From Amoeboaphelidium protococcarum X5 (lineage: Eukaryota > Fungi > Aphelidiomycota): DNA of 64,000 nt. Numbering within the stretch: position 1 is the stretch's first letter; each line of letters begins with the position of its first letter. The stretch is taken from assembly GCA_023515725.1 (NCBI GenBank), contig JALDTO010000207.1:68908-132907 (forward strand), read 5' to 3'. The translations under genes and the position numbers were made by a program. A model generated the notes under the pieces. The model had not been told where the DNA came from, did no database searches, and saw only the letters and a program-made list of their open reading frames with translations. Below, piece by piece: positions 2,484-61,384 of this stretch.

Positions 2484-2671
2484 TTATCGGTCATTTATCT
2501 TGTGTGTCACACTAAGTTCATCAATGTTTACTACTTAAAATAGCTCTTCAATATGTCCACAACGTTTTATACATAGTTAATTATCAGACACTTGAATTTA
2601 ACATCGAAACGTTCTTCCGAGGCATCAACTACACGTAAGAACTGACACGACAATGTCCAATACTCTTTAAA

Positions 2672-2684
2672 ACGCGTGACGCGT
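2672..2684. promoter_or_regulatory. Tandem ACGCGT (MCB-like) elements in a divergent promoter
   Basis: ACGCGTGACGCGT lies between the divergent starts at 2483 and 2834. ACGCGT is the MBF site in yeasts. Confidence 0.4.
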
Positions 2685-2833
2685 CACTCCTGATTTCGTG
2701 TTGACAAGCGATTCATTACCGGTCTTCTTCCTACACTTGACTTACTCTTTATTGTCTGAATTATTCGAACAAATTAGTCTGATTATCTTATTCTTCTCAT
2801 AATTAGTATATATAATTGAGTGAAGACTTAATA

Positions 2834-5800: not shown

Positions 5801-6376
5801 GATCCATATGGACCTCATGCGTCCAGGTGGTGTATGAACTAGCAAGATTGCCAAGTTGGGCCGATTGATCTAGTTCCTAATGGCGTTGATGGACTCGATT
5901 GCACTGGTGGTTATCAGAACTTGTCAACTATAAGCAATCGAACTGAAGTTACTTTCTCTCTAAGTGTTCCAGGTGTAGCGTAATTCTGGAAGAGTTTGTG
6001 GGACCGGGATGGAGCCGCTGTGAATGTCACAATCAAAGGCCAAGTCTTGATTGGATTGAACTCGGTACCTTTTGTTGGAAAGCCGCGGTTAAATAATACA
6101 GATCCTCCATCGAAGAAGGAAACTGATGATGTTAAGCATGGCAGAATACCGGCTGATTTAGTTGATCCTTATTGGTTTGGCGTACAGGATTTTGAAAAGT
6201 CAAACACATTCGTCACTTGGCAAGATTTTGGTTAGTTTGAGACTCCATTAATAATGAGACGATTCATAAATGGTGGTAATGGGAGACCAGAGCCTCTAAA
6301 GTTCACTGTTCCGGGTTGTGATGAGTATTGATTCTGGATTGAGGAGCGTCCATCACCTGAAGTTGACGAAGCCTGA
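2834..6376 (+). CDS. Large (1180 aa) type II membrane protein with beta-rich luminal repeats (DUF3712/LEA_2, Tag1-like)
   Basis: One continuous frame with TAR=Gln, ending at TGA. Acidic disordered N-terminus, RRPWYRRKCC, one TM helix, then repeated NPS/NPL-type beta segments with many NxS/T sites. Absorbs ORFs 3506, 3941 and 5996. Confidence 0.7.
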
Positions 6377-6555
6377 ATAATAATAAATTGTTGAGTATAC
6401 CATCGTAGAAAGATTCTTCAGTGTGCTAAGTTCATATCTGCTTCTTGTGTTTTTGTTCCCTCCATCTTCAGACACTTTGGTTCCGGACTTTTCCGTTTGT
6501 CTGTTTGTTTCGTCTCCCATCGGCTCAAATCTTAATCGATCGCGTCGACAGTCGC

Positions 6556-6616
6556 GTTTCAGGTGAGGCTTTCACCGGATGGTTTTGAAACCGTTTCAGC
6601 GGCCTCGCACTATAAA
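6556..6616 (+). promoter_or_regulatory. TGAAAC-N-GTTTCA palindrome plus TATA box upstream of the small RLGGGKP gene
   Basis: GTTTCA at 6556, TGAAACCGTTTCA at 6586-6598, TATAAA at 6611-6616. Confidence 0.55.
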
Positions 6617-7090
6617 TTCAGATTCCCATCGGTTTCACTTCTGTTCTCTCTTTGTTTCGTTATCAACAATAACATTTGTCTAAACAATTGTTTGGAACTC
6701 TGGACTGTGTGTTCTCTTAACATGCAACTACTTTCTTCCGCTTGAGATGCTTCCGTCCCCTGATGCTGGTGCTGGACTTTCTTCTCCTTTATCAACTCTG
6801 AATCCTCCTCCTTGGTCCTCCGTCCTCTTCTTGATAACGTAGTGCTGTATCAGGTAGATATTGTGTTGGAAGTGATGTCCAGAACGTCTGCCCCTAAACC
6901 GAAGCGTGAAAAGTTTTTTCACAACGATTAAGGCGCCACTCTCATTAACTTCTGATCCTTGAATGATAGACATCAGCCACACGGCGTATACAATTAATAT
7001 TTCTTTGTTTCACTTCATTGATATATTTCTACATATTCCGTCTTTGAAGGCTCTGGTCTGCTGTTTGGATTCCTCTGTATTGATTTTAAC

Positions 7091-7577
7091 ATGGCTACCA
7101 TCTGGCTGCAAGTATGGCCTGCTGCTTGATGATGTTCCATTGTAGATGTTTTCTTGTAGGCGAGACTGGGTGGGGGTAAGCCACTAGGGCAGTCCGGTGG
7201 GCCGAATGTCTATTATCCTCTGGAACGGAGAGCAAAAGGTTGCTGGTAAGATTAGCAAAGTTGGTTGGTTCCTCGTCCCTGAAAGATTTGATCCCTTTCA
7301 CAGAGGCTCGTCGGGTTAGTGGTGGTAACGATGACTGGTGGATGGATGCCTGCCAGTTTGCAGTGAAGCTCTACGTCGTCGAGTTCGTGACGTCGAACCG
7401 CTTTGCTAATTCTGGAGCAAGTTTAACTCATCTAATACCTGGCACTAGGGCGAGCGGCTGTTGTATACGAGGCTGGGCGGGGGCAAGCCAGGTGGGCAGT
7501 CCGGGGGATTGAAGCAAACGACGCCCTAGTAGCATGTGGTATCTACTTGGGTCCTGACTGCGTCTCATTAAGATTGA
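7091..7577 (+). CDS. Small (~106 aa) protein with a duplicated RLGGGKPxGQSGG motif, 2 introns
   Basis: Introns 7112-7159 (GTATGG..TTGTAG) and 7246-7363 (GTAAGA..TTGCAG) give MATIWLQARLGGGKPLGQSGGPNVYYPLERRAKGCCEALRRRVRDVEPLCQFWSKF..LYTRLGGGKPGGQSGGLKQ..TWVLTASHQD*. Apart from the variable x codon, the two motif copies differ only at third codon positions. From memory it resembles a small conserved fungal protein family of unknown function. Confidence 0.75.
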
Positions 7578-8020
7578 CGTGTGAATGAGAGCGAGTCGCA
7601 CTTTGGTCTTGTTGGAGTTGACACTGATTCTTTTTGATTTCGCTTCTGCCAATGACGAGCTGATTGGTTTTGTTCCTCATGGTGCTTCTGGGAGGTGCAC
7701 GATTTGGGTCGCTGATGGCAGAGCGACACCAAGAGCCTCACTCTAATGATGTTGGCCACCTTGACGTGGTATTAGAGCTCCTGTTCTACAGGTCTAAGAG
7801 CCAACACTCTATTTAATGAATTTGATTTGAGTATAGTCTTTAATCTCTAGTTTAATGTATCTCTTTGGTTATTTTCTAACAGAGCATGGATTGCAAGATG
7901 GCGACATTAGATATAATGATAGGCGATCGATATGAATAGATTTAAGCCTGAGCATTGAATACAATCGAAAATACAATAAGAAAGTCTTTAATGATGACAA
8001 TAAGTAGCGAGTCATTCATT

Positions 8021-10207
8021 TCACACCGTTGCTTCATTGTAACAAATGTTGAGCATTTGGATTACATCAACCATTGACAATTGAACATCCAACATTTCCT
8101 GGGACTAGATAAGTGGACTCAATGGCTGCTGTAAACTGACAGGCGACGTTGCTGCACTACCACTGCCACTTGCACTACCAGCTTTTACCTCCTGTATCTG
8201 CTACTACCTTGCGCGTAATTCAATCGCTAAACTCTTATTATCAATATAGACACCAGCCTTAGTCAGTTGAGAAGTCAAACATTATAATCTTTCATGAAAG
8301 TAATGCATTCCGCGTATCAGGACTTGAACTGACACTTTGCCACTAACAGCGTTCATACATCTCAGCAAAACTTCAAGAGATCCTTCACCAGTCACCATGC
8401 CATATTATTAGTTAAGAGCTGCATAGAATGGAGACTCTCCCTCGATAATCTGGCGCCATATCCTATCATTAATTTCATCCAATGTGCCATTCACCTCATC
8501 CAAATCATACTGCTGTCTCATAACTTTCGGTTTCTGCAACGGGTACGTATGAATTATCAGCGGACGCACGTAAAAAGCAATAAACGCCAAAGCCATGTAG
8601 ATCTCACCATATACGGACTTCTAAGATCTAAATACAATCAGCTCCTTCCACAAAATCAGGACAGAATCCAAGTGTGGCTCTCTCAGTGACTGAGTAAATT
8701 TATCTCCAATAATCTCCACCTGTTCACATCTCAAATCTCTCTTGAACAGAAGCAGCAGAGACTTGAAAAACCAAAAGAAACTCTTTGAGCCATGTCTGTT
8801 ATTCTTCATCTTTTCTTCTAGAATATTTTTAGTGCCACTAGAGCTGGAAGACTACTAAGCATTACTAGAGTCTGAAGCATTGGTTTCATTATTGTTAGAT
8901 ACAGCGGATGTCTCCAATTCAGTCCAATCATCCTCAACATCCCTAGCAGTGATGGCCTCATCATCTTATGTTTATTCTCGCTGAGCAGAATCTGTGTAAC
9001 TTCGTTAAGCATTACTCTAATGGGCACGATTATCATTAGGATTGGATGTGCTAAACTTATCATGAGAGTCCAAGTCTGTCAAATGTTGGGCAAATACAGG
9101 ATCGAGCCACTTGATGCAATGGGATAGCATATTGAATCGAACATTCATACCACTCTAATTGGTGAGGTAATTAGAGAATATATCTCGCGTAAACAGCAGT
9201 TCTCTCACATTACTTTAATCTACTACTGAATTACCACCATCAGAAATAAACTTGACATCATGGCTCTGGGGACCAAACATGAATGATTCAATTAACGCAA
9301 AACATATAGCGAATTCAACATCATCATCATCACTCGGGATCTAATTGTATCTCTACTTGAGACTGTCAGTGTTTATGATACAAACGAGATACAGGAATGG
9401 ACTTAGAAGATCAGACATTCCCTAGACATATCCAACCTCAGGATGTCTCAAAGCCAGACTGAACAGAACCAAGCGCATCAATCTCAACCGAGGATTCGAC
9501 AGATAATTAGAAGAATCATCACATCGGTACATAGTAATACCTGCATCAGTTCTCACTATATCCTTGTCTATTCTATGCAATATCGTATCCAGTTCTGAAG
9601 GATCATTATTATTATTACCAACCTGCTCTGGAGACTTTATCATCCACTCAGATTCAACCTGATTACGCACAGTCAATACTGAATCCAAATATGATCGATT
9701 AACATCAAAATTAATTCTAAGACTTGATAGCAGTTCATCTAATAGTTACAGATAATCAATCTTTAGGTCCTCACTGCTTTATTATTCGTCACTTTCAATC
9801 TGATCAGTTGAACCATAACTCACATCAACTGGCGGCATATCAATATCTATGCGATACTATTCATATAGAAATCTTTACAACAGAGCCTCGGTCTCCCATT
9901 CGTATTACTTTTATCTCAGCTGAATATCTTCTTCATTAACAATAATATTCTATTACCTGTGTTAAGAGTACAGATCCCCAGCGGAAAACAGAGTATTATC
10001 ATCATTCTGTCTGGAACCACCTTGCAGACTATCTCTAGCCTTGTCAATGAAAGAGTCTGCCATATCCAACACTGACAATATCCGCTCTCCATCCCTCAGC
10101 TCTCTCTCCTGCACCACACGCTTCAATTATCCAATACCATTCTTGGCTCCATGCTCCACCATTGATAAAGCTTCATGCGTCTTACTAGCCAGCCAATCCA
10201 AATTCAT
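8021..10207 (-). CDS. TBC-domain Rab GTPase-activating protein (728 aa)
   Basis: IDKDIVRT (Arg finger) and GYV-[TAG]-GMSDLLSPF, the YxQGM Gln finger with TAG at the catalytic Gln. Also FFWFFKSLLLLFKR. Ends at TGA. Confidence 0.9.
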
Positions 10208-10655
10208 TATTTATAATAAAATCACTTAAAGTATCTCTAACTAATTATTACGAAAAGAGTGATGATATGATATGATATATTGATGATGATGCACGAGCCA
10301 AAGAAAAATAAAGTGTAGTTAAATGAAAGAGCCTACCTGCTTGGTCTAAGACACGGAAAGAAACGTTTGAGGTCCATCGGGAGAGAGCAGCGAAAGGGGA
10401 GGGAAAGAAAAAAGAGGCAGTCAACAAAGCAATGATGAGTGCCGAGACAACCGGCTCGACGTGGTCAGTCGCGCGCTGATTCAATCATTCACTCATACTA
10501 GCGTCACATTGCGAGACAAGATGGTGCAAGGCAACATGGATGCGGAACACGGTACACAAGAAGCTTAGTGCCGTTATGATCAGATTCAAACAATTGGGAA
10601 TAATAAACATAGTTTCAACATCTTCATCATTACATCAACACATAAGGACATGTTG

Positions 10656-11900
10656 TCAATCAACAGAAACGGCCTCGTCTTGACTGATCGCTGAAGAAGC
10701 AATTGAACGCGGTGCTCTCTTCATACTCGATGACTTGTCATTATTGCCATTAAACACTTTAAATAAATCACCACGTGGCTTTTATCGCTTAGCATTCTTA
10801 TTGCCGCTTTCATTCACTGGCATGGCCGCATAATTACCCGGTGCAGTCTAAGCTTCAGATTAAGAGTTGATCACTCCAGTCACAGTTTAGTATCGCGATA
10901 TAACAGGTGATCTACCGCTCTAAGAGACACCTGCACGCAACTCTATATCCCTTCCGCTATTTGTATTCAATTAATTTCCATTAAGATTGTTCTTGTTCTT
11001 GTTACTGTTACCATTCTAATCTTTATCGATACCATCCACTTTATCATTCTCACTCAACTATCTGCTGCCGGCATCATGATTTCCACCACTTTATTAGAAT
11101 GGAGACTGAGAGTAAAGACGGGAGTACTCTGAGATCTTATCCACAGTATTAGAACTGTATCGCTTCCAATTGAGGCTATTACTTTTACGTGAATTACTAG
11201 CAGAACTCATACTAGCATTAGGAGACTACTAACTCAATGCAGATGCAGATTATGGGGAATTGTATTGAGGGGACTCTTTATAATCCGGCAAAGATGGCGG
11301 GGAGGTGGAATACGTTCCATGATTAAAAATACCACTTGGCTTATTAGATTACATATTCAAAGTGCCACTACTCCCCGTCTTTATATTATTAACATCAAAA
11401 CCAGAAGGAGTTGAATGATCTGCAGTACTACTACCATTATCTTATTGACTATCGACAGTCTATTGCTATGATTATTAATCAGAATTATCACCGTCATCTT
11501 AAGAAGTTGAAGGACTCTTACGTCGTCGTTGATAAAATAAAGAAACTATGGTCACCACAAATCTAAAGGATACCATCCATAGAACCAAATTAAAAGCAAT
11601 CAATCCATACACGACTTCAGTGATAATCTAACGACCAGCTCGTACTTTGGATTAGATTCCATCGCTGATATAATTAAAAGATGACGTGATCATACGAATA
11701 GCCTTGTAATTATAATCAATAAACTTGGAAGCATAGGCAAACATGGTGGGAATGGTTCTAAATGCCAAGGTGTATGCCACAGAGCCCATAAACGACATGC
11801 AAAACACCAATACTGATATCCAAGTCAGAGCCGCATACACTGCATACTCTTACACAATCTCGAACAATGTTCGTCTTTCAACTCTAGTAGTAGCTTGCAT
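10656..11900 (-). CDS. Hypothetical membrane protein (414 aa): N-terminal hydrophobic helices, disordered S/N/Q-rich tail
   Basis: Open frame from ATG 11900 to TGA 10656 with TAR=Gln; contains ORF 11652..11840. Confidence 0.65.
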
Positions 11901-12163
11901 ATTCTTAATTATTACTGTTATTATTATCAGTATCAAATACTATCACAAAAACCAGAGATTAGTACAATATGCCACAACAAGCAGAGAGAAATTACAGAGG
12001 TGATTATGAATTGACCCTGAAAGAGAAAAGCTGAAAGAGAGAAACGAACGAAGCGAATCAACGCTGATTCTTTCAAGAGAAAACTGAACAATTACAGTAT
12101 TTAAATTCTGTTGCTCTGTGTTGTCAAAGTAGTGGTTTTAACTGGAAAATATATATTGATAAA

Positions 12164-13132
12164 ATGGAAGATGCAAAGAAGGCGGCCGCAGAAGCTGCTT
12201 TTCGCGGATAGATCTTACCGTTACTGAGTATTGATCATAAGGATGATAGTAAGAGTGATTAGGTGAAGAAGAGATAAATAGTTGTTGGAATAGGCTCTGG
12301 ATCTACAGTGCCGTATTTGGTTCCGCTGTTGGATAATCTGGCTGAATAGTTATAGTAAAAGTATCGCATAGTATGTATTCCAACATCTTATTAATCTCAA
12401 CAGCTGATTGCGTAATCTAAAAACTTGCAGCTCGGAACTCTGATGCAATACCCTTAAATTGATATCACTATTGATGGCGCTGATTAAGTGTTTATGATTT
12501 CGCGTAATGATGATTTTAATGATAAGAATAATATGTCTGATCATTATTTAGTATCAGATATTGCATGTATCAAGGGTGGTGGTGGATGTCTGCTTTAGGA
12601 GAAGATTGTGGCGTCAGCATCACGGAGATTTGTTCTGATTGCTGATGATAGAAAGCTATCTCCTGCTGGACTATGTTCATTTACATCTTCATGGTAAAAT
12701 GGGATACCCATTGAAGTTGTACCTGCTGCTGCTTAGATTGTTCTTGATCAGCTGCTTAAATCTCCTAGCGATAGTGTTAATAACAGTAATGAGTAACGTG
12801 TCATTGGTAGAGGCTTTCAATCTGGAGAAGAATCAGCGTATAGTACAAGGTCTCCATTTGTGGTTAAGTAGGCGGTATTGAGATCTGGATCTGGTAAAGC
12901 TGGGCCGGTTGTGACAGATTCCGGTAACTTCATAATCGATATAAAGATTGGATCAGCATTGGACTCTATTGAGAAAGCTAGATAGTTGGAATTGTATCTG
13001 CTCAGTATAATCGGTGTTGTTGAAGTTGGCCTATTTGTTTGTATGGCAAACTCTGTTTACATTGCGTCTACATCTACACCATCCTCATCATCATCCTAAA
13101 CTGATTCTAAAGTTACTCTATACCGCAAATGA
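12164..13132 (+). CDS. RKI1: Ribose-5-phosphate isomerase A
   Basis: VGIGSGSTV, CIPTSY, IDGAD-[TAA]-V, IKGGGGCLL-[TAG]-EKIVA, IPIEVVP, GKAGPVVTDSGNFIID, GVVEVGLF. Confidence 0.95.
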
Positions 13133-13252
13133 TCGAGTTTCTATAATGAACAAAGCTTTATACATGCAACAGATTTTTGCAGTAAATGTAAAATAAACAA
13201 AGTAAAATAAATCAAGATATATTTTCTCATTATGCCTTTAACAATTCACTTT

Positions 13253-14323
13253 TCAAATAAAGTGGTAACACTTCATAAGAGGCACCTTTTGGATAACTTT
13301 ACGCGTGAGCAATAACTACTTGATCGCGTTGAACTGCGACTCGTCATGAACGTCATATTTATCTTGTAGCCACTTGTTCAACTATCGCTCACTAAACACC
13401 TGATCTTGAGGTGTGAATGCACGGCGATACAACTTCTTGCTGATATCAATCTTTAATGGTACTCCGATGGCTGCATTATTGGACTTCAGGATATACTTGC
13501 ACCATTGATCAAACTGGAATTGGGTAAAATCGTACGATAACAGAGCATCTTTCCACAGTCTGTAGAGAGTAGTGTTATCGTTACAGATTGAAATATAGTT
13601 TTTACTGATCATGGCCGGCAGCAGGGAGTCACCGCCATCAAGTGGATCATTAGAATCGTCGATAGCCTTAATCAATCCATCAATGTCGCGTCCATGAGAT
13701 AGCAGCGGCTTCACATCAGCACCATCTTATCTAGCCTTGTTCAGTTACAGAGTACATGGAATCAAGATGAAGTACTTATTACTTAGATAATTGGCAACAT
13801 GTTGTGCCACTTCAACTGAGCATAGTTTATCATTTTAAGTAGTATTAGAACTGGAATCTTCAGAGATATTAGTCGCGTCAGTCTCAGATGAAGAGCTTTA
13901 AACAGACATCAATTGCGGCAAATGAACACACACCAGTCTCTAAATCAATTCAATCGCATCTGCTCCCGTGAATACATTAGGATGTTTAATACCAAAAGCC
14001 ATTACCGTCTTTGATTTAAAAGCAATCTCCTGCCGGAAATCTCTAATCAGTGCTTACAAACTATTAACATTGCCTTTATGCCGACCATCATGAGATTTCG
14101 GTGAAGATTGTCGCGTTTCATCAATGCCGGCCAGTACATCCTCCACCAGAGTCTCTGAGGCAGTATAGAATGAACAATTAGACACTTGATTCATCTTGCC
14201 AGAATCTTCAGAAAATACCTGCGTCTTTCTACTAAAGAATGTGCCAGATCGCTTCAATTTTAACGGTTATTACTGCAACTACGGACTGGTGTTTCCATCT
14301 TCTTACATAACGGGCGCCTCCAT
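13253..14323 (-). CDS. Hypothetical protein with a DEP-like domain (356 aa)
   Basis: Single frame joining ORFs 14054..14257 and 13382..13714. HPNVFTGADAIELI resembles the DEP N(C/V)FxG motif. Confidence 0.6.
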
Positions 14324-14769
14324 GCTCAGATGAATCAAGCAATGGTCAAAAATAGAGAAATGGTATCCAAAAAATTAAGGCAAATTATTGTTAGTAGTAA
14401 TACTAATTAATCTACAATACAAAAGAAAGATGACAATCACTTACAGCAATAATGATAATGATGATGACTACAACAAGGCGATGGTATAAATGAAAGTTGC
14501 AACGCCCCTTGTTCACGCGACAAGATCAGAACGAGTGCTGAAGCGGGGCGTGGCTATTATAGTTTTTATCGCGCGGTGATAGTTTTATCGCCTCACATTC
14601 ACATAGACTCATCCTATTTTAAATCTGGCGTCATCTCTTTAATTCTTTTTACTGTTCTTATTATTCCTGGACTTTTAGAGGAAATTTCCTTGTTTCAACT
14701 TTGTTACAATCATCGTTATTGTATTCTAGATTCACGAGTTTAGCAGTTCAGATCTCTAAAGTATAAGGG

Positions 14770-16095
14770 ATGAATCTGAATAAAATGTTAGAGCGACTGG
14801 TGGGAGATGAGATTGTGAACAAGAGGGCCAAGAGTTACTTGGGCTATGAGCAGAAGATGGAGAGTAGAGATTGTGATAACTATGGTGTATATGCTGCCAA
14901 GTTAATAGACTTTGTCAGTGACTGGTTAAATGATAAAAGTAATTAATAACCACAGCCATTTGACAATGAGCTTTAACAAGATTAATTTTGGAAAGATCTT
15001 ATACGGCGATATCTTGTACTTAACTCTAGATAGTTATCAACATCATCAGCATTATCTGATTAGGACGCGGATACTATCAAAACTGATCCTGTCGATTAAT
15101 AATCTTTTGATGACTTGTTCTTCTTTGTGCTTGATGATTATTCCAAGTCTACCGGTACTGATAATAGCAATGGTGAATCTGGAGGATATTAATCCACTAA
15201 TGTAATAGTGCGCAGAAATGATGCGGATACTTCGCTTGAAGTTCATGTTGCGCATATACTACCTAGTGCAGAGATTAGGTGGAAAGATACGCTGCTCCTC
15301 AATTTAATTTGTCATTTACAGTATTAAATTGTAGTCTCAAAGTGCACAAAGAATCTGAATATTTAGCGCAGTGAGCGATAATAGAAATTAAAGATTTCAA
15401 GTACCACTTTGATACCTATAGAGTAATCGGTGAAGAATCTTTACGCGTCACCATATAAAATGACTGTAATGGATGCTGGCAGGTAGCACAATAAGTCGTC
15501 TTCATTAAGTAGCCATAAGTTGACCTATCCTATTTGCTACTTTACATTGAGCGATTATGATTCTGCAAGTTATAGTGAGGATTCTGATGGCAGTGCAAGT
15601 GGACATATAATTCTGAAAGATAGTTTGCATGAACGAGACTTGGAGTATTTGACAGTAGAATTGATCCTCAAGATTCCACGATTGAATTCCGGCGGTGGCG
15701 ATAAATCAACGGATATGACTCTATTCCAAGGTGCCGTGTCTTACTATGCCCTTCGAGAAGCCTTTTAGACTAAGCGGAGATAATCTGTGTAATTCGACCC
15801 TCTTCAGAATTTAAAAAATGTTTTCAGTTCCATAAACAGATAATTTAAAGGCTAGTAGTAGTCATCTGATATATAGAATCAAGACGATGTTCATCAAGAT
15901 TAGTAATTCATATTGATGCGCGGACCCAATGGGAAAGGCTTTGCTTAAGTGGCTCTATCAGAGATTGTCTATGAAGATTAACAGGTTGGATCTTCCTAAA
16001 TTTAGAGTATCTAAAAGGGATTAAAATGCGACATGGTGTACATATCTCTGCCTCAAAGCAGTATCATATCTGACATTTTGAATGCAGTAATTTGA
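14770..16095 (+). CDS. KIAA0930/DUF2045-family protein (441 aa)
   Basis: DDLFFFV, WKDTLLLNLI, LYASP, TYPICYFTLSDY, LFQGAVSY, MRGPNGKGFA. Confidence 0.8.
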
Positions 16096-16172
16096 TATTA
16101 CATCATGATATTTTACACTTTAATATATGCCATTTCATATTACACAGACTGACTGACTTTACTTGATTCTAA

Positions 16173-17243
16173 TCATTCCTGGTCCAGTACTGTGATCAGG
16201 CTAGCCTTGTATTATTTTAATGATTAGATTAACCAAGGAAGTCGTGGTAAGCGAGACTTTTTTATCACCGCAGGATGTTCAATTAATGAAGACTTGAGAA
16301 CTAAAGCCTAGTCAGACTCCTTTAGTGTCGCATCATCCACCTTTTTATCATCTAACGCGTGTTCTGTTACATTGACTTCATTATTAGAGTGACTTTATTG
16401 GTCCAATTCCATAAGTGAAGCAGTCTTGAATTTAATGCTGCGAGTATGCTGCAAAGTGCCTTGATTGATTTACTCACTACTCAAGTTCAGTCCATCTTAC
16501 TTTTGCTCTCGCATGATGTGCTGTATTACACGTTTATATGTAGTCTCTAGTCGCGGTTCGCAAGTGTTATATGCATCAATGAGGTTCTAGTCCATAGTGT
16601 TAACTATCACCTTGAAATCATCCAAAGTGATAATAGATTAAATATGCTTCAACGCAGCCATAAAATGGTGCTAATAAATCCCGTTACTTGTTTTATCTTT
16701 GTTCTATTAACCGTGACTGATTAGCGTTAACAAAGCAGATATTAACTCATTGTATGACTGTACGCGGGATTTAGAGGATATATACCTGATGATGAAGCTG
16801 CACGTTGCAACAACCACTGCCTGATTTTCTGATTAAAGTCCGAATACTACTAGGCACTGAACAACTGATGAGTTGACGTTAATTTTATGGAGCAACTTGA
16901 TCAAAATTGACTATGTAATCAACCTAATGCGAATTCTATTATGAATTAGAGTGGTCCGTATCAAGATCTTCATCACTATCCAGAAATGTTCATTATGTTA
17001 CGGATTAAAGACATGCGGACACTTTATCCCCAGAGAGTAGATGAGCATACAGGAGGAGAACACCATCGCAGTGTCCTAGGGAGAGTCTAGACATTTACAG
17101 AGTGGCAGCCACATAGAATCCATAATTATCTATGCATCTCGCAGCTTATTTACTTTTAATAATCGCCTAACATGATCAATCCCAAGATGGACATCTTCCT
17201 ACTTTGATGACTCTAAATAGCCTTTAATTGTTTCAAGATCCAT
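16173..17243 (-). CDS. Hypothetical helical-repeat (HEAT/ARM-like) protein (356 aa)
   Basis: Uninterrupted frame with TAR=Gln from ATG 17243 to TGA 16173, with an amphipathic helical pattern. Absent from the ORF track. Confidence 0.6.
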
Positions 17244-17516
17244 GGTTCATTACAAAAGAGCGTATCCAAGGTGAGTTGATACATCCTCTTTATCGTCACC
17301 ACTGATTGCAACGGAGTCGTTTGCTCAACAGCTTTAATATACGCAAAGTTTAGTTTATCGATAACGTGTGAAGGCCTCAATTGCTTTAAAGTATTGAAGC
17401 CATGGACTTGATACGATCACATTAGAAATACAATGTCAATGACACGAAATACGAACAAAAGAGACACTTTGTGGCAATAAATATTCATCTCTTATAATCA
17501 ATAGTATTATACGACA

Positions 17517-19376
17517 TCATTCGTCATCATCATTTACAGCACTGTTAGCATCAGAAAGAGGTTCTGTGCCATCAAATTGTCTCAAAATCAGAGCCTCCTT
17601 TTTAAAGTTGTTCTCTGTCGACAATCTGCGAGACTAGCGCCGTTTCACACGATCAGCCAACGAGAAGTCCGCACCATCGACTGGCACCTGAGCAACTACT
17701 GGTCTTTAAATCTAAGCTATCAGTGCATCCACATCTACGTAATTCTGGTCATCATTAACAAAGTCCTTGTGCTTGATTGACGCGCAGTGTTCCACCAGGT
17801 CGGCGAATTTCTCCTGACACACCTCACAAAATCCAGGTTTCTATTCAGCAGCATCAGCGTCAGACTTTTTTTTGCGCACAGACATGTTGGCGTCCCTCAT
17901 CTACACCATTTTTTGATATTTCTACTTTGAAGCTTACTCCAACTCCTCCAGTCGAATAATACGCCCTTCTTCCGTGAGTTAATGGAGCACCTTCGGTGGT
18001 TTCCAACTGAATAAACCGTATGGATCTTTCATATTACCTGGCTTTTAATTCAGTCTCTTCAGCTTCATGGCCTCTTTCGATAACACTGGCCCCTTTTCTT
18101 CCTCGTCATCATTCTCTGGCATGAGCAGATCGGAACTCTCAGGTGGATAAAATGGGCAATCACCAGGCACACTGTCAAAGTTGAGATAAGGCAATGTGTA
18201 CTCATTGGGAAGTAATTCTTGTCCCATTTTCAACTTCTTCTTACATTCGTGGGATGGTACAAATTCTTTAAACACTGGCCGGTAACAATTGCCTCTATCT
18301 AAGACTAACATGTATGGGAACTTGAATTCATGAAACTGCGACTATTTAGGATCTTTATACCAGTATTCCTATAAAAGACGTTTATTTTCCAATTGCTAGT
18401 AGTCAGGCGCTCCAAAATACTTCTTCAATGCAGTAAGGACCTGATCAACATGTATGACTCGTATGCCAGATTCTCGAGCTTCACGTATCACAGATTCGCG
18501 GTCAACCTCAATCGATGCCGACGAGTTTACAGTTATGACAGACTGAGTGCCTGGGTGCTGAGAGTATATGGAAGCGGCAAGTTTCGGTGCAGCTGACAGC
18601 ACTGATGCATTATCGACAAAATTACTATTATTGTGATGACGTCTCACCGGAGGATTCGGGCCGCTTTGAGAAAAGTGCTTCTACTACTGAGCCTTACTTT
18701 CATTAGCGGACGGATGACAGGATACCAATATAGAGACTGAAGAGTCAAAGGTGGTTGAGTACTTGCATACTTCATTATCTTGCATAAAGGACTGAATGAA
18801 AGCCAGCTTGTGCCTATCCTTGACATCCAGCATGAACACATTCTCACGGAAGTACCTGATATAGTTTTTCTATTTCATGCAAAACTACTCTTCCTGAAGC
18901 TACTTTGCAGACTTCTGCTCCTGATCCCGCTTAAGCAATTTAAAGCTTTGCTGTTACTTGGCCGCAATGTCCACTTCGAAGGTACGTTTACGCACAGCAC
19001 GGGCTGGCTCTTTATCAGCACTTCTACTTTTAACCTGCTTAGTTGACACAGCAGCTGCAGATATATTCTCTTATTCAACAGACTCCTGAGCCACGTCAAT
19101 CTTGGTGCTTACTCGCTAAAAGGATTTGGTAAAACTATATTAGGCGCCTTGTTGTACTTTTGCTGCGACAAAGGTACGCTTTCTCTCCTTCTACTATAAG
19201 GCGACTTTTTCTTACAGAGTCGATACCTTATTGCTCTCTGTTCTTCCAGGACCAGTGATAGCTTAAGTAGAATGAACATAATTACCAGTGACATTAACTT
19301 CATTGCGTTTAAGAAGACTGGCAGCATATGATGACCGCAATTTGGGTAGATTAGAGGCAGCAGGTTAGTTCTCCAT
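17517..19376 (-). CDS. DBF4: Dbf4/Dfp1 regulatory subunit of Cdc7 kinase (619 aa)
   Basis: Motif N-like ARESGIRVIHVDQV, motif M-like KFPYMLVLDRGNCYRPVFKEF, and a DBF4 zinc finger KPGFCEVCQEKFADLVEHCASIKHKDF. Confidence 0.85.
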
Positions 19377-19693
19377 CAGCAGATACGATAATCAGATTCT
19401 AAAAGAAGTTAAAGAGTAGATCAAGACCAGATAAAAAGCACACAGAATTGAAACTGACGATAGAGGGAAATACCGTAAAACAATTAAGATAAATGTACTG
19501 GGGACTGCACAAGAGTTAAAGATACTGTAGATAACACGGTGCAGAGAGACCGAGAAATGACCAAAGTTGAAACAAAAAGAGGGCGCGCATAGCACCGCGA
19601 ACTGAGAAGATCAAATGGCGACGAAACTTTATTTCGCTCATGTTTCACTTCCTTCTGTCTCGCTCGGTCTTGATCAACCAGTCTCTATCTGAT

Positions 19694-20539
19694 TCAAGGC
19701 TTCTCAAACAACTTGGCAACCTGCGACTCTAGATTGGCATCCTATTTTATTATATCGCTCACTTGCTTTACAAAGTCAGGAAATGTTGGATCCTTCAGAA
19801 TTGCGTCGATTTTGGCATCAATTCTCTCTTCATTACCACACAGTTGGTCCTAAGTGCTAATCTACGATGCAGTAGAGTTGATTTTATCATTGATTTTTTG
19901 TTACGTTGCAGCCATCGCTTCCAGAACTGATTAATCTTCAAGTGACTGTTTTGATTATATTGTTGCAACTGGTATCGAATGCTAAGTAGTATTTCCTTGG
20001 GCAATGACTAACGCATCTCCGACCGACTATGTTGATAGAGTAGTTGCAGGTGGCATCTAATGCTAAGTGTATCCATTATCAGTGGCTTGTCCAACATTCT
20101 ACGATGCCAATCTTGGGACGCTCAGCATTGGAGGACTAAACGTTTGAGATGGCGCAATGTTTCTGACAGGCGCGTTCCAGAATTGAGAAGCCTAACTTTG
20201 AGTGAAACTGTCACCATTCGACGCGTCTTTGATGTTCAGAGAGCCAGGCAAGCAATTTCTCAATAGATTACAATCTTCTGGAGTTTTGAACTTTAATTAC
20301 ACTTTGATGGAAGCATTTCCTTCAATATACTTTATGCCAAACGTATCGTGTTTCGTTACCAGCTTAACATTATATTTGCAAAGATTTGCCGCGTTCAACC
20401 CAAGTTCAAACACAACGCTCTGACTGTCCCTGACTACGAGCTTCGAGTCATAGTAATCAACTTCACAATTATAACTTCTGGTGTCCCAAGCACTTGTCTT
20501 TGCATTGTAAAAGCTAATCTTTCTCAATTCAATATACAT
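19694..20539 (-). CDS. REC114: REC114-like meiotic double-strand-break protein (281 aa)
   Basis: N-terminal PH-like beta region, S/Q-rich linker, and C-terminal IDAILKDPTFPDFVKQVSDII. The last matches the Rec114 terminal signature LxDxxFxxFVxxV. Size fits the family. Confidence 0.7.
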
Positions 20540-20714
20540 GACTATCTCAAGATGTATTTATTTTAGAAGTAAGTTGATCAAGTCCACAAGAAACAAAAGT
20601 GAAACGAAACGAATAAATCTTTAATCAAATGCTACTATACTTGGTCATTATCTACAGTTACGGGTCAGTTCCTAATAGCAATAGCAAATCAAGTCAATGT
20701 GACTGCATGAACTT

Positions 20715-21779
20715 TCATGGAATTAGAATAAATGAATTTGCACTCATGAGACCGACTTCAGCCTTGGCAATTGCCAAATCGGTAGGCAGCATATCAATTC
20801 GCGCCAGTTCACTGAAGTGATAATTAGTTGTTGATAGCTCGCCTACGCAATCATTCGATATATTCACATCAGAAGAGGTAGATGATGCGGGTAAGGACGC
20901 GTCACCACCAGCACTTTAGCCATTACTAAGAAGGAAATAATCGATGCAAAAGCCAGTGGCAAAAGCGAGAAGAACAGAGACGGTGAACGCGTTACCATAA
21001 GGTAGAGCTGGTTTCAGTCGTTACTCGACGCCATTCCATGCGGCAGATATGATACTCCACAAATCCTCAGTCTCTACTTCACCATGATTGTCATTACCAT
21101 CAGTGATAGCATTCAACTGACGATTAGGAAAGAAGATGCCAGATAGCCCAAATCTTGAGCCTCCAGAAGGTAGAGGAGAGTCACTGAATCTTACATCTTG
21201 ATCCCCGATATGATGCGATCGCAGTTGGATACCAGATGTAGAACTTGGCTTTCTCTTTCTCCTGACACGAGTAGACTCTTCGTTTGAACCAACCACCACG
21301 ACACTTTTACCACCAATGCGACGCGACACCAATGATCCACCAGAATATCCAGCAGGGATGGTGACTTGCGATAGAGGAATCGCTTAAAATTCAAGACTGT
21401 CATGCGATGACTCAGCATCATCAGTGCTGTACATGAAGTCACATTCACTAGATGCCGCACTACTATTCGCAGCACTGACGCTAGACTCCTTCTTACCATA
21501 TCGTTGTAGTGCATTACTTATGGACTGAGGGTCAGAATGCTCACGCGCAATAGCAGATGAAGACGATCTGCTCTTGATTGAACGCGGGCTCCTCGGCGTG
21601 AGCGTCCGACTCCCAGTCGTTACAGACCTGACTCCCAAATCAACATCATCACTCTCCAAGTCAGTGCTCAGCATTGAATACGAGCTCATGCTACTCTTCA
21701 TATCCTTTTACTATTAAATTAGTAGTTATTCCTCACTCATTCCAACTTGATTCATATCTTCCATTTTTACAATTGACAT
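20715..21779 (-). CDS. Hypothetical Ser-rich protein with one C-proximal TM segment (354 aa)
   Basis: ORFs 21384..21701 and 21021..21332 join via TAR=Gln. TM-like NAFTVSVLLAFATGFCIDYFLL. Confidence 0.65.
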
Positions 21780-54493: not shown

Positions 54494-55185
54494 TTGGAGC
54501 TGTAATCAAAAGAGTTTTAGTTTGATGTATTGTAAGGTAATATAACTCTCAACTGTGAATGGCCTTAAAATGTAACATGTTGAAAACGCATAGTCATCAA
54601 TTAGTGTGTTGCGATGCGTTTATTAATAGCACTGGAGTTCGCCAACAGCGGAGCTTGTAGCTTGTAGCTTTTGCTCAGCTCGGCTAGCTGTTTCTAATAA
54701 ACGGTATCAATTGCACGTGTATATAGTGGGAAAAAAACAAAGTAAAATAACAACACCAAGCATATAAAGAAAGAAATCATAATTTCAGCTAATTTTATGA
54801 GTGAAGCCTTTGCAAGCAGTTAAAAATACTGACCAAATAAATATACAGGGACAACAAATAATCAAATACTTTTCAAAATCAAAACGTAAAAAACATTGCA
54901 ATTTGCTTGATGCACAGGCATAACATATTGGATAGGTACCTTATTTTTGTTTAGAGAGCTGCTCTGCCAATTTATCGCCCGGCGAGACTTTTGTCGTTTC
55001 TCGAGAAGAGGCGCGACGAAAGCTTGGCAGCAGGACCTTGGAAGGAGTTGAACCCATCCGCTCTTGTAATCATATTAGAGAACCATGTCTTCCAACAACA
55101 ACAAAAAAAAACTTCTTGTTGACCTAACTTAACTTTAGATGATTATATAGAACCAAGTATGTAGTCAAAAAAGCAAAAAGAATTG

Positions 55186-55258
55186 GAGCGCCTAGTGGAT
55201 TCGAACCAATGACCTTCGGATTATGAGACCGACGCCCTAGCCGCTGGGCGAAGGCGCT
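55186..55258 (-). tRNA. tRNA-Met (CAT), elongator-like
   Basis: Cloverleaf with acceptor stem AGCGCCT/AGGCGCT, anticodon arm TCGGT-CTCATAA-TCCGA and GGTTCGAATCC B-box; downstream T-runs serve as a Pol III terminator. Confidence 0.93.
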
Positions 55259-55272
55259 GAGTAAATACTGAA

Positions 55273-55509
55273 TGTTACAGTCGTGCAGACTGATCAATGA
55301 TCTTTGCCTATTGTGGCTGAGCAACGTTCCCACGCCTCCTCAAGATTATACAATCAAGTTCTCACGATAGATGAGATCCATCTCTTTTGATCATCGTGTT
55401 AATATAGTATTCAACTTATTTACACGTTTTTACCTTGCTTGTCTGGTTAGATCCTGTATAGTCAGTCTAAGTTCCCCTGTCTAGTATATCAAGTAGTCCC
55501 GATCTAACA
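55273..55509 (+). repeat. 5' LTR
   Basis: Direct repeat of 60199-60435 with TG..CA ends. Confidence 0.97.
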
Positions 55510-55510
55510 C

Positions 55511-55520
55511 TTAACACGAT
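55511..55520 (+). other. Putative self-priming primer-binding site
   Basis: TTAACACGAT is the reverse complement of ATCGTGTTAA at 55393-55402 inside the LTR. No TGG-initiated tRNA primer site is present. Confidence 0.75.
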
Positions 55521-55531
55521 CCATAAGTATC

Positions 55532-56503
55532 ATGTCTGACTTCCGTGCCACAACACCTGAAGGTGTAAATGCCGAAATGTTGCATGCGTTGCATAATGCT
55601 CAGGTTCACAACGAGTAGTTATAACAATAGATTGCTGCATATGAAAATTAGCGTTTGTCCACTCCAGCCCAAGTTCCAGTGTCAGTAGAGTAAAATTCAG
55701 TCATCTTGCCTTCCAAGTACAATGGTGAGCGTGAACTGTTCCGTGGGTTCAGAAATTAGTTAACCATCCTGTTTAAAATCCATCCTTAAAGGTACAAGAG
55801 CGACGAGATTAAAATTATGACCGTCATATCTTTGCTGTCCGGTAATGCCTTGTAATGGGTCAATCCAATACTAGAACATCCGAGTAAATATCCAGATACT
55901 TTGGCCAATTATGACAGGTTTATGAGCGCGTTAGCTGCTGCATTCTAGCCTATTGAGCAAATGGCAATTGCTGGGAATCGAATTAAGCTATTGAAGCAAC
56001 TGAAGAAGACTGCATCTGTATACTCTACTGAATTTTTAAGTCTTGCTTCCGACTTAGATTGGAATGATTCTGCACTAATGTTCTAGTACAAGGATGGGTT
56101 ATCTTATCAGGTTAAGAAGATGTTATTAGGATACCCAGAACCAAGCAAATTGCAAGAGTTGATAGACTTATCCATCAGATGTGACTAACGTCTGTCTTTG
56201 TTTCATGCTGCAAATGGCAGAGTTGTCAATAATCAATTATTCCAGAATATCGCTAATAATCGCATTCCGTAATTTGGTCCTGCTAATAATCATCAAGTTG
56301 TTCCAGCTGCAGTTCCAGTCAACAATCCAGATGCTATGGAGATAGATCAAATTCAACGTGGTAGATTGTCGCCAGAAGAGAGAGCCCGTAGAATCGCCAA
56401 TAATTTGTGCATCGTCTGTGGTTAGACTGGTCATTGGAGACGTGACTGCCCATTAGCTGTTCGTAACCGTCCAGCGCGCCGTGCATAAGTCAATGAGCAA
56501 TGA
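55532..56503 (+). CDS. gag: Retrotransposon Gag with CCHC zinc knuckle
   Basis: LPSKYNGER, LSGNALQW, YSTEF..LDWNDSAL..YKDGL, AMEID, CIVCGQTGHWRRDC. Ends at TGA 56501-56503. Confidence 0.93.
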
Positions 56504-59500
56504 CAGTTAGTTAATGAAGATGATAATGGTATTGAAGTAATATTGAATCTGAACTCAATTTCATCTTGCAAAATTCAACTTAACAGTACAATCCTTATTG
56601 GCACATAATCAATCAAGGCTATACTTCTACTGGATTGTGGTGCTGATGTCTGTTTCGTCAGCCAGAAGTTGGTGGATACTTACAAGATTCCAGTGGTTCA
56701 ATTGAAGTAGTCCATTACTGTCAAGTTTGCCGATGGCAACGAGGATCATTGCACCAAGATTATCCATCAAACTACACCCTTATAGTTGCATATTGGTGAA
56801 CATATTGAAACGATTACCTTCCTGGTGACTTAATTGTCATAAGATATCATTCTTGGCATGTCTTGGCTGAAGCAACATAATCCGCTGATTGATTGGATCT
56901 AAGAGAAGGTAACATTTAACTCTGATTTCTGCGTTATCAACTGCGTTGTTCATGAAACTTCTGTCTATAGTAATGCTTAGTCCTCTTCTAGTGTCAGATT
57001 GGAATAAGAGTCTTTAAAATAACCTGCTCCAAAGGTCTCTTTCAATCTGAATTCTATGGTCTAATCCAATAATATAGAGATGGCAGACAGTCATCTTGCC
57101 ATCTTATCTAATGTTGATTCATCTACACAAACAGAATAATAGCTAAAAGAAATTAATTCACCTAGTTCTGCTTCTTCAGCTACTGCAGTTAAAGTTTCTA
57201 CTGAGATTCAAGTGGATGTTTCAGAAATTCAGTCGTTGGTCGAAGAAGAGAAGCGTTCCATTGTTCTGGAGATTGATGATCTTTACACTCAGATGCGTGA
57301 TATCTCTGAAGTTCCGAATAATACTGATCATGTTAATTAAGAGTTGCCAAAGTAAATAGCTGATTATTAAACTGTGTTTGACAAGAAGATGGCTGATTAA
57401 TTGCCGCCTCATCGCGCGTCTGATTGTACTATTGATTTAAAGCCTGGCCCTGAACCATTCTTTGGTAAAGTCTATAGTCTGACTAAAGAGGAAGATTTTG
57501 CCTTGAAGGAATGGTTGTAAAGTAATATTGATAAAGGTTTCATTCGTCCAAGTAAAAGTCCATTTGGTGCACCTTGTTTTTACGTGAAGAAGCCTGACTG
57601 GACTGGAGATAAGAAGTTACGTCTGTGTATGGACTATCGTGCATTAAATAAGAATACAATTAAGAATAAGAATCCAATGCCTTTAGTATCTGATATATTT
57701 AGAACGCTGCAAAAAGCTAAGATGTTTACTACTTTGGATTTGGTTGGTGCATACAATTTATTGAGAATAAAGGAAGGCCATGAATTTAAGAGTGCATTTC
57801 GAACTAAGTATGGTTCATATGAGTTTTTGGTTATGCCTTTTGGACTTGCAAATGCTCCTGCTCAGTTTCAGACTTTTATGAATGAACTGTTGAAAGACTA
57901 GATTGGAAATTTTGTCATTGTGTTCATTGATGACATTATTATCTATTCAGACAATGAAGATGAGCACTGGTAACACGTCCGTGAAGTTTTGGAGATCTTA
58001 AGATAGAATAATCTTTACTGTAATATTGCCAAGTGTCACTTTGCATAGCGAGAATGTAAGTATTTGGGTTATGTTCTTTCAAAGGATGGGTTGTCAATGG
58101 ACTTGCGTAAAGTTGAAGCTGTTTTGAAGTGGCCAAATCCAAAGAACGTGAATGAAGTGTAAATGCTGCTTGGTTTTCTTAACTTTTACAGAAGACTTAT
58201 TAAGAACTTTGCTAAATTGACCATGCCATTCACTCTGCTGCTGAAAAAAGATGTTCAATTCTGTTGGGGAGAAGAGTAGAAGGCTGCATTAGAGTAGATG
58301 AAGAAAGTTTTTGCTGATCCTCAATTTCTCATGCATCCGAATGAAGAGAAGCCATTTATTGTTGAAACTGACTCGTCTGATTTTGCCATCGCTGGTGTTT
58401 TGTCTTAATATGATGAAAATGGTGAATTGCGTCCTGTTGCGTTCTATTCTCGTCAAATGATTCCTGCTGAGCGTAATTATGAGATTTACGATAAAGAATT
58501 GCTAGCTATTCATGAATGCTTTAAAGAATGGAGACACTTTTTGTAAGGTGCTGATCATCAAGTCACTGTTTTGTCTGATCACAAGAATCTGCAATACTTT
58601 ATGGAAACAAAGTAGTTAACGCGTCGTCAAGCTCGTTGGGCTACATTCTTTGCAGAGTTCGACTTCGTTCTTACATATCGTCCTGGAAATAGAAATGGCA
58701 AAGCTGATATACTATCTAGAAGGCCCGACTATTACGTTGAAAATGATAAGGCTAATTTCTTGCGCATTATTGATCCTAATCAAGTAGTTAACGCGTTATC
58801 ATTGGCTGTTTTTGGTTCAGTTGATCAAACGGTGACTATTTAAGAAATTGAGACTGTGAATTAACTAGATTGGCCTCTTTATGTAAAGAAATGGCTAGTT
58901 TCTGGCGAATGGAAAGCAGATTTGCCTGTTGAAGTTTTGTAGTTATGCAAAGATCAAACTAAACATTTCTCTCTTGATGATTCTGGTAATCTCTGCAGAA
59001 TTGCTGATGATGGAATAACTAAAAGTTGGTATTTACATCCTTCTTCTCGTCTGGAACAATTGGAAAGACTGCATGATAAGCTTGGTCATTTGAAGAACGA
59101 CTCAATTGCTGAATTGATTAAGAGAAGATACTGGTGGCCAAAGATGGATCAAGAGATTAAAGATTACATTTCTCGTTGTGCATATTGTTAACTTGATAAG
59201 TCCTAATCTACTTCTGTGTCATCCACTCCTATTAAACCAGTTCCACCTGTTGCTTTGCCCTTTGAAAGATGGGGAATTGATTTGGTATAAGATCTGAGTG
59301 AGACTAAGTCTGGTAATAAGCACATTATTACTGCAATTGATTATGCTACACGTTGGGTCATTGCTAAAGCTGTTCCAAATAGAGATGCTAAGACTGTGGC
59401 TAATTTTATTTATCATGAGATTGTAATGAATTTTGGCGCTCCTTTTGAAATTATCAGTGATCGTGGTAGTTCTTTCTTGGATGAAGGTGTTAAATACTAT

Positions 59501-60226
59501 GAGAAGAAGTGGAACATTAAGCATCTAGCTACTTCTCCTTATCATCCTTAGACCAATGGAATGATTGAACGTATGCATGCTATGTTGCGTCATGCTATTG
59601 CTACTCTAGCTGCTGGTAATCCTTCTCGTTGGGATGAATATTTGGCAGAAGCTGTATTTGGTATTCGCGTCAGAACTCATGCAGTTACTAAGTCATCTCC
59701 ATTTTATCTCATGTTTGGAGTAAATCCAAGAATTCCTGGTGATACTCACCCACCATTGTCATCTATGAAGCCACTGGATGAATTGGAAGAGATTGAAGTA
59801 GAAGGTGCAATTATGGCTAGAACCTTCGAAGAAATGGGTAATGCTAGACGCGCTGCTTATGAACGCTCGTTGACTCAAGCTGAATTGATGCGTAAAAGAT
59901 ATAATTTGGATCATAATGCTCCTGAGTATTTCTTCAAGGTTGGTGATTGGGTGAAGTTGAAGCATTATGGCAAGAGTAAATTTGAGTTCAATTGGAAAGG
60001 CCCTTACAGTGTGGTAGATGTTGGGTTTCCTGGTACGTATTGGCTAATGACTCCGGCTGGCTTGCGTCTTGACTCTGTTGTTAATGAATCTGATTTGGCT
60101 CCTTGGCTTTAACCAACTGTTAATAATGAATCCTTCTTCTATGATGGTACTACAAGAAGAACTAATGCTTTACGTCAAGGTTTTGGAGAGGGAGATAGTG
60201 TTACAGTCGTGCAGACTGATCAATGA
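56504..60226 (+). CDS. pol: Retrotransposon Pol (PR-RT-RNase H-IN), in frame with gag after a TGA
   Basis: PR LLDCGA and ILGMSWL..NPLIDW; [21 protein letters not shown]; RH ETDSSD, DKELLAI; IN H..GH..CAYC, GIDL, SDRG, GMIER and a GPY motif. No ATG of its own at the start; the stop lies inside the 3' LTR. Confidence 0.93.
60185..60198 (+). other. Polypurine tract
   Basis: GGAGAGGGAGATAG directly precedes the 3' LTR. Confidence 0.85.
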
Positions 60227-60435
60227 TCTTTGCCTATTGTGGCTGAGCAACGTTCCCACGCCTCCTCAAGATTATACAATCAAGTTCTCACGATAGATGA
60301 GATCCATCTCTTTTGATCATCGTGTTAATATAGTATTCAACTTATTTACACGTTTTTACCTTGCTTGTCTGGTTAGATCCTGTATAGTCAGTCTAAGTTC
60401 CCCTGTCTAGTATATCAAGTAGTCCCGATCTAACA
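60199..60435 (+). repeat. 3' LTR
   Basis: Direct repeat of 55273-55509. Confidence 0.97.
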
Positions 60436-61384
60436 TGAAAACTGCTCACTATGCTAAATATATAGCAATTGAACAAAACGCTTGGTAATTTGACACTCTA
60501 AAAATGATATCTATTCTCTGCAATAGCATGTCGAGTAGGCTTGTATCATTTGAATTGAAAAAGTCTTACTTTAATTACGATCTGATCGATGAGAAACCAT
60601 TTCAGTTCAGTAATATTTTTGTGTTACGAATTCCTTTTTGGTGGCGTGTAGTCAATCTTCCGCGATTGTTGATCTATAGAAAGTTCACAATGGCTTTGAC
60701 ACAGTCCACGCAGTTCTCTTAGATGTCTAAATTAATTTTATAAGACTAGACACTTAATAAATGCCGGTGATCAACAATCGAAATAGCTTGCTAGCTGTAT
60801 CAACGCAGAACTCTCCATGAGCCTTGAAGGCGGACCCATCGCGTCATGCGAACAGACTTGCAACTACTGTGTTAGTCCAGTTTGATGGGCAGATGTGCTG
60901 GTGGTTAAATGGCTTATTGCAAAGAACACCATCTTTGTATAGGCAAAATGACTGTCCTTTTGTAAACTATTCTTCAGTTCAGATATAGTCTGTATCAGGC
61001 CCAGTTAACACCACTCTTCCTACTGCTCAGTTAGATTCTGTTGATCCGCCGTAGAAGAAGGCCAAGGTGGAAGAGGAGTTGGATCGCTTGTCTCAACCAG
61101 TTGTAAGTTGAAGAGGTACTCGTTACTGAAAGTTTCGCGAGAGAGTAGAAGCATTGATGGGCGAAGATAGAACTGTTAAGCAATTGATGTGGATTGGACA
61201 AGGGTGATCATCAACACACTCATTAACGGGGATAGTCAATGGTTGCTCCTGTTGGGTATGGCGAAAGTCAAATATATATCTAAAGATGGAGACAATAATC
61301 ACGGCTTGTTGCTTGAAAATTCTATTTAAAAGCTGCAGTTAAGTACGTAATATTATTTGCCACAATTACTAGAATATAATCAAT

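Follow-up and report, generated by a model that had tools for sequence, protein, structure and literature searches.

Probable self-priming leader in a Tj1-like Ty3/gypsy retrotransposon inserted next to a tRNA gene of Amoeboaphelidium protococcarum X5

How is reverse transcription initiated by an LTR retrotransposon whose 5' LTR is not directly followed by a TGG primer site? This question is raised by an element located in the window, which is the complete 64,000-nucleotide stretch of DNA analysed (positions 68,908 to 132,907 of contig JALDTO010000207.1, Amoeboaphelidium protococcarum X5 assembly GCA_023515725.1). The original prediction read the leader of this element as a tRNA-independent, Tf1-like self-primer, in which a site next to the LTR pairs with the start of the element's own transcript. 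The leader was compared with those of related elements in the same genome (23.6 Mb in 346 contigs searched) and of relatives in other organisms.

The element is a Ty3/gypsy LTR retrotransposon of 5,163 bp (window positions 55273-60435; Table 1). Its two LTRs, which have the termini TGTTA...TAACA, were found by a repeat search to be identical over their full length, and because of this identity the element is young and recently active. Target duplications of 4 bp were also found at copies A2 and B (ATTC and TCCA), which are described below.

Table 1. Features of the retrotransposon and its surroundings (positions in the window)
Feature	Position	Strand	Remarks
tRNA-Met(CAT) gene, elongator type	55185..55258	-	ARAGORN; Rfam RF00005, 56.8 bits
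Target-site duplication TGAA	55269..55272	+	Second copy 60436-60439, read directly
5' LTR	55273..55509	+	237 bp, 100% identical to 60199-60435
TATA-like box TATACAA	55347..55353	+	46 nt upstream of the LTR 10-mer
Conserved LTR island	55376..55428	+	82-88% identity between families (own-genome DNA search, blastn, alignment); holds the 10-mer and the block following it
Proposed self-primer ATCGTGTTAA	55393..55402	+	Exact complement of 55511-55520; at predicted RNA 5' end
U5 stem, 5' arm GTTAGATC	55446..55453	+	In MFE and centroid folds
U5 stem, 3' arm GATCTAAC	55501..55508	+	Complementary to 55446-55453
PBS TTAACACGAT	55511..55520	+	One base (C55510) past the 5' LTR
gag ORF	55532..56503	+	ATG 55532; terminates at TGA 56501-56503 (frame scan)
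pol, in gag frame	56504..60226	+	Protease, RT, RNase H, integrase; TGA 60224-60226 inside 3' LTR
Polypurine tract GGAGAGGGAGATAG	60185..60198	+	Abuts 3' LTR
3' LTR	60199..60435	+	237 bp; own 10-mer copy at 60319-60328

The reading frame that opens at the gag ATG extends over 4.7 kb into the 3' LTR and contains 49 in-frame TAA or TAG codons and, before the 3' LTR, a single TGA, at 56501. Since the element is young, these codons imply that TAA and TAG must be read as sense codons in this host, leaving UGA as its sole stop. The sequence TGA-CAG-TTA at window positions 56501-56509, which includes the sole in-frame TGA, fits the stop-CARYYA readthrough motif. A tRNA gene with the anticodon CUA, labelled Pyl by ARAGORN, is located elsewhere in the genome (L038 4956-5029; C158, minus strand); its product is probably the reader of UAG as a sense codon, which is consistent with the code reassignment. 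Stop-free pieces of the element matched the Pfam families RVT_1, Integrase_H2C2 and rve, and weakly MLVIN_C, in the domain order of Ty3/gypsy. No Pfam match to Chromo or SH3_Tf2-1 was found in the element, and its final 186 amino acids matched, weakly, MLVIN_C alone, with a leftover tail of about 38 amino acids that is too short for a chromodomain.

Immediately 3' of the 5' LTR follow a C, the ten bases TTAACACGAT, the 11 bases CCATAAGTATC and the ATG of gag; a TGG primer site is absent directly after the LTR. Re-reading of these positions bore out the coordinates and sequences of the original prediction, including the perfect pairing of the putative primer binding site (PBS) with the 10-mer ATCGTGTTAA in the LTR. 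The duplex ATCGTGTTAA/TTAACACGAT is exactly 10 bp long, with the bases on either side unpaired. When the first 14 nt past the LTR were compared with dinucleotide-shuffled versions of the LTR, a complement of at least 10 nt was reached in 22 of 20,000 shuffles for the window element and in 57, 22 and 21 per 20,000 for the sister families (overall p about 0.001-0.003). A functionless coincidence would thus be expected in about 0.1-0.3% of cases, and the genome holds many LTR elements; this explanation is taken up again below, with the evidence from other families.

The original prediction also described a U5 stem between the two arms listed in Table 1. The 8-bp pairing is indeed present, in both the minimum free energy (MFE) and the centroid fold, and a stem of this length was reached in 123 of 20,000 shuffles. 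As a conserved feature, the stem was rejected: none of the sister families has a homologous counterpart, their best pairings amounting to 0-6 bp. A U5-IR-like stem-loop beside the primer/PBS duplex is required in Tf1. The fold energy of the leader 55393-55520 is unremarkable (z = -0.92), and fold stability was consequently set aside as uninformative with respect to self-priming. For RNA running from the 10-mer through the PBS, the closing helix was present wholly or nearly so in the unconstrained MFE folds of 6/7 families (9/10 pairs in family D).

The genome contains a second full copy of the window element's family (family A, copies A1 and A2), together with several sister families that have an identity of 72-77% in the RT core. 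The comparison of 5' LTR and PBS covered two copies of family A, three of family D, and families B and E. Between A, B and D/E, the LTRs can be aligned only at their termini, at the TATA box and over a 53-nt island around the 10-mer. Despite this divergence, both 10-mers are identical in families A and B. Families D (all three copies) and E carry AACGTGTTAA in the LTR and TTAACACGTT as PBS, with one pair changed on both sides; through this compensatory double change all 10 bp remain paired, and the register is that of A and B. The register itself, with the PBS starting one base past the LTR, is the same in 9/9 LTR families. Old solo LTRs, which are part of a stack of LTRs on C192, display the mutated 10-mers ATCGTGTTAG and AACGTGTGTA, and the 10-mer is therefore maintained only in elements that retain an internal part.

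Several other candidates in the genome were tried and discarded. The PBS-like TTAACACGGC at L031 2616 is a chance occurrence in ordinary host sequence without an LTR; an element on C98 (RT 51% identical) is degenerate and lacks a usable LTR or PBS; and ATCTTGTTCA, found on C233 in a B-like LTR, is uninformative, since this LTR is truncated and fused to another repeat. Further, more distant RT matches are located on C162, C249 (272 kb) and C290.

Outside this genome, a 126-aa piece of the RT was searched against 1.84 billion protein representatives, which yielded thousands of relatives. The nearest full-length RT relatives are 66-69% identical and have no Chromo domain, followed by a tier at 62-65% with SH3_Tf2-1 and Chromo, an integrase tail of the Tf1/Tf2 kind. 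Among solved structures the best RT match is Ty3 (4OL8 and 7Q5B; E about 1e-25), with a score of 94 bits versus 150-190 bits for the relatives that are Tf2-like or lack a chromodomain. A 21.5 kb locus (L051; JAKFGI010000206.1) contains, at positions 2079-21350, four related and nested gypsy LTR families; it belongs to assembly GCA_021556675.1, which is that of Batrachochytrium salamandrivorans (PMC11515996). All four contain ATCGTGTTAA in the LTR and CA-C-TTAACACGAT at the LTR edge. The lengths of R plus U5 in these families are 60, 163, 238 and 243 nt; judging from the sequences compared, it is the pairing that is conserved, and not the spacing or the sequence in between. An older LTR at the same locus (8091-8384) has the D/E-type PBS TTAACACGTT at its end and a decayed internal 10-mer. 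Polypurine tracts comparable to that of the window element were found in families B and E, in X2 of B. salamandrivorans and in the relative L045.

More distant RT relatives from metagenomes, tested with 5,000 shuffles each, display the same LTR/PBS layout with other sequences. The chromovirus L047 has a 12-nt pair, GAAATTGGATCA/TGATCCAATTTC (0/5,000 shuffles), and the metagenome relative L055 a 10-nt pair (18/5,000); pairs of 9 nt were found in the metagenome relative L046 (24/5,000), the chromovirus L053 (85/5,000) and L063, an RT relative on contig JAABUS010001769.1 (129/5,000). In L057 the match extends over 7 nt only, and the LTR ends are uncertain; L045 and L054 contain either too short a portion of LTR or no PBS. 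The original prediction had proposed looking for covariation between primer site and R region across related elements, and it is present: one pair is changed in both of its bases between A/B and D/E, and five distant lineages carry other complementary pairs. That the complementarity is a functionless product of chance is extremely improbable, since it recurs in nine LTR families and five distant lineages in the same layout and with one compensatory change, while the 10-mer is lost in decayed solo LTRs; chance would moreover require the pairs of the relatives to be artefacts of LTR-end placement.

Self-priming demands that the 10-mer be located at the 5' end of the RNA, and the promoter geometry bears on this point. 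The conserved island around the 10-mer (Table 1) is probably the transcript start and R region. A TATA box is located 36-46 nt upstream of the 10-mer in 9/9 LTR families (46 nt in family A; 41 nt in B, D and E; 36-39 nt in the four B. salamandrivorans families), and the 10-mer, which starts with an A, is preceded by a pyrimidine in 8/9 families. Based on this TATA spacing and the pyrimidine-A context, we infer that transcription starts at or just upstream of A55393. In many eukaryotes the spacing between TATA box and start is roughly 30 nt. Because 36-46 nt somewhat exceeds this usual value, the start could also be situated some 10 nt upstream of the 10-mer.

This looseness at the nucleotide level gives some room to the explanation that the pairing is real and does not provide the primer. 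It could be a leader structure involved in packaging, dimerisation or translation control, or the 10-mer copy near the RNA 3' end (60319-60328) and the 5' PBS could circularise the genome, a variant which presupposes a transcript start downstream of the 10-mer; that the helix closes the whole R-U5 domain in MFE folds would suit a structural role as well. The circularising variant would bear a loose resemblance to Ty3, which has a 5'-3' bipartite PBS, of which the distal element binds the tRNA. Unlike that distal element, the LTR copy in the present families would itself occupy the PBS in competition with any primer. Furthermore, minus-strand synthesis must begin at the U5 edge, where no other primer complement is found, and a start downstream of the 10-mer would need an unusually long TATA spacing in 9/9 families. 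We consider a role of the pairing other than priming to be improbable.

A different possibility is that the PBS binds a host RNA, either an internal or half-molecule tRNA fragment, as in copia, or a small RNA ending in ...CGTGTTAA, and that the LTR copy is incidental or has another use. Half-tRNA primers are known in Ty1/copia lineages (PMC6317226), and at least six LTR families from two distant hosts share one and the same 10-mer, as would be expected if a conserved host RNA fixed the sequence. In the clade carrying this 10-mer there is a single covariation event, the rest of the evidence there being conservation, which could also reflect a constraint imposed from outside, for example by a host RNA; an identical 10-mer in an aphelid and a chytrid exceeds what a freely co-evolving primer/PBS pair needs. 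The tRNA catalogue that was scored for the 10-mer comprised 63 of 1,171 candidate genes, a sample that leaves room for such a primer.

The searches themselves argue against a host RNA. A match of the site to a host tRNA, which the original prediction had named as the result that would speak against it, was not encountered: the exact 10-mer is present in 0/63 scored tRNA genes, and the PBS region pairs with ten distinct tRNA sequences over at most 6 nt. In the whole genome the exact 10-mer occurs 89 times versus 47 times for the control, and the counts of its 8-nt core CGTGTTAA beside a T-loop motif were at control level. Three multi-copy contexts of this core were examined as tRNAs and rejected: the one beside the B element (C207) matched no tRNA model in Rfam at E values up to 10, the one on C98 and C250 has no anticodon arm in the 61 nt read, and the one on C245 is followed downstream by the context of the L035 match, which lies outside any LTR. 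A host-RNA primer would also leave unexplained why every family has a same-sense copy in the LTR at a TATA-fixed distance, why LTR and PBS changed jointly in D/E, and why relatives with other PBS sequences have matching LTR complements. Together with the lack of a TGG, these observations make a host-RNA primer quite improbable.

The Tf1-like self-primer reading of the original prediction is supported by the conservation of both 10-mers in diverged LTRs, the compensatory double change, the distant relatives with other complementary pairs, the TATA-to-10-mer spacing and the lack of a tRNA match. We consider it likely, on the basis of these sequence comparisons, that the leader 55393-55520 is the R-U5-PBS of a gypsy element which starts reverse transcription by self-priming, a mode demonstrated for Tf1 and put forward for Tj1. 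RNA synthesis would begin at or just upstream of A55393, and the first 10 nt of the RNA (AUCGUGUUAA) would fold over the approximately 117 nt of R-U5 and pair in vivo with the PBS. By analogy with Tf1, the RNase H of the element would then cut at the end of the duplex to generate a 3'-OH, from which the RT would copy U5 and R; both the cleavage and the priming step are proposed on this analogy. Plus-strand synthesis would finally copy the primer back into the PBS, and primer and PBS would change together because of this proposed copying.

The insertion sites of the element and its relatives display a clear association with tRNA genes. The tRNA-Met(CAT) gene listed in Table 1 faces the 5' LTR with its 5' end across 14 bp. 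Copies and solo LTRs of these families are located 13-35 bp from the mature 5' ends of tRNAs for Met, Gly(UCC), Glu, Pro, Gly(GCC) and two distinct Lys(CUU). Their orientation is mixed: the tRNA gene lies behind A1, D and E, which are directed away from it, and A2, the C192 stack and an LTR on C98 have the same sense as the gene. The C192 stack (L034 6069-6973, minus strand) is composed of three LTRs in head-to-tail order immediately upstream of a single tRNA-Glu gene, one being the 3' LTR of a B-like element and the other two solo LTRs of families D and A, and represents repeated insertion at one Pol III gene.

Other sequences were found in similar surroundings. A repeat of about 235 bp, with 92-94% identity among its copies (L044 7640-7876, L032 2076-2309 and L042 6576-6812), adjoins retrotransposon LTRs at 3/3 loci and has a tRNA gene within about 330 bp at 2/3; it may represent another family of solo LTRs. 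No tRNA gene was found past the 3' LTR of the B element (C207). About 70 nt beyond this LTR is one copy of a three-copy sequence with CGTGTTAAGTCACGGGTTCGAGAC (L008 1690-1730, corresponding to C207 7441-7481; C214:184789; C249:552128), which has a T-loop-like motif and no Rfam match, and which could be an unrecognised Pol III-type target. In the standard-code genome GCA_013565735.1 (contig JACCDR010711887.1), a chromodomain-less relative with an RT core 69% identical (L045 4734-5100) has a tRNA-Gln(UUG) gene situated about 10 nt downstream of its 3' LTR end; its LTR contains TCGTGTGTTAA, and the contig stops short of the PBS.

The original prediction knew of no described element in which self-priming, tRNA-gene targeting and stop readthrough occur together, and saw here a candidate for a new system. 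This claim of novelty does not hold, as Tj1 of Schizosaccharomyces japonicus combines all three (Guo, Singh and Levin 2015, Mob DNA 6:19, PMC4600332). Tj1 is 5,003 bp long with identical LTRs of 244 bp, has a PBS that can pair with its mRNA's 5' end and an in-frame TGA closing gag without which it is inactive, and in transposition assays placed 13/17 new inserts at most 12 bp upstream of tRNA genes (PMC4600332). The likeness of the window element to Tj1, which rests on the published description of Tj1 rather than on protein or primer sequence, comprises membership of Ty3/gypsy, a size of about 5 kb, short identical LTRs of comparable length, a PBS complementary to an upstream LTR sequence, which in Tj1 is taken as the mRNA 5' end, a gag closed by a TGA with pol in frame (here the sole TGA before the 3' LTR), and insertion just upstream of tRNA genes, although at 13-35 bp from the mature 5' ends rather than within 12 bp. 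Unlike Tj1, which inserts only in the orientation of the Pol III gene and generates 5-bp target duplications, the elements described here are found in both orientations and with 4-bp duplications, and their host reads UAA and UAG as sense codons with UGA as the sole stop. The element thus shares the described trait set of Tj1 and represents no new mechanism.

By the complementarity between PBS and LTR, the element falls into the same mechanistic class as Tf1, and Tf2-type chromoviruses (with SH3_Tf2-1 and Chromo) are 62-65% identical to it over the RT core. It differs from Tf1 and Tf2 by having no chromodomain and no SH3_Tf2-1 match. Tf1 consists of a single gag-pol ORF, whereas here a TGA is located between gag and pol. 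Further differences from Tf1 are the duplex of 10 nt instead of 11, the unconserved status of the U5-IR-type stem, and the targeting of tRNA genes and not of Pol II promoter regions as in Tf1 (PMC4600332). The PBS of Tf1 pairs with the initial 11 nt of its RNA, which RNase H cleaves between bases 11 and 12 (PMC7175516). Self-priming has been predicted for the Tf1/sushi group (Maggy, Skippy, Cft-1, Tcn1 and sushi-ichi) and for the plant TAR lineage of copia elements (PMC6317226).

With Ty3 the element shares integration at Pol III genes (at their transcription start sites in the case of Ty3), and the lack of a chromodomain, and Ty3 is its best match among solved RT structures. Ty3 uses the 3' end of initiator tRNA-Met as primer and expresses pol by frameshifting. 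The window element, unlike Ty3, has no PBS for initiator tRNA-Met, lacking both TGG and a tRNA complement, and its pol is in the gag frame. To our knowledge, Tf1 is the only element with proven self-priming, and Tj1 the only one described as joining it to Pol III targeting and a leaky gag stop.

It is conceivable, though doubtful, that a Tj1-type, chromodomain-less, Pol III-targeting and self-priming gypsy lineage is old and widespread in the early-diverging relatives of fungi, with the pair ATCGTGTTAA/TTAACACGAT frozen in at least six families of aphelid and chytrid and a one-pair variant in three further aphelid families. If true, this stasis of the primer pair would point to a sequence-specific recognition of the duplex by RT/RNase H or by a host factor. 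The findings extend a rare replication strategy, as the Tj1-type combination would now be present in the fungi's sister group, with the priming signature found again in a chytrid that kills amphibians. They also provide natural primer/PBS covariation data, previously unreported for this lineage. Because a compact and apparently intact element is located here in a host with UGA as its only stop, it would be a convenient system in which to study readthrough and priming jointly.
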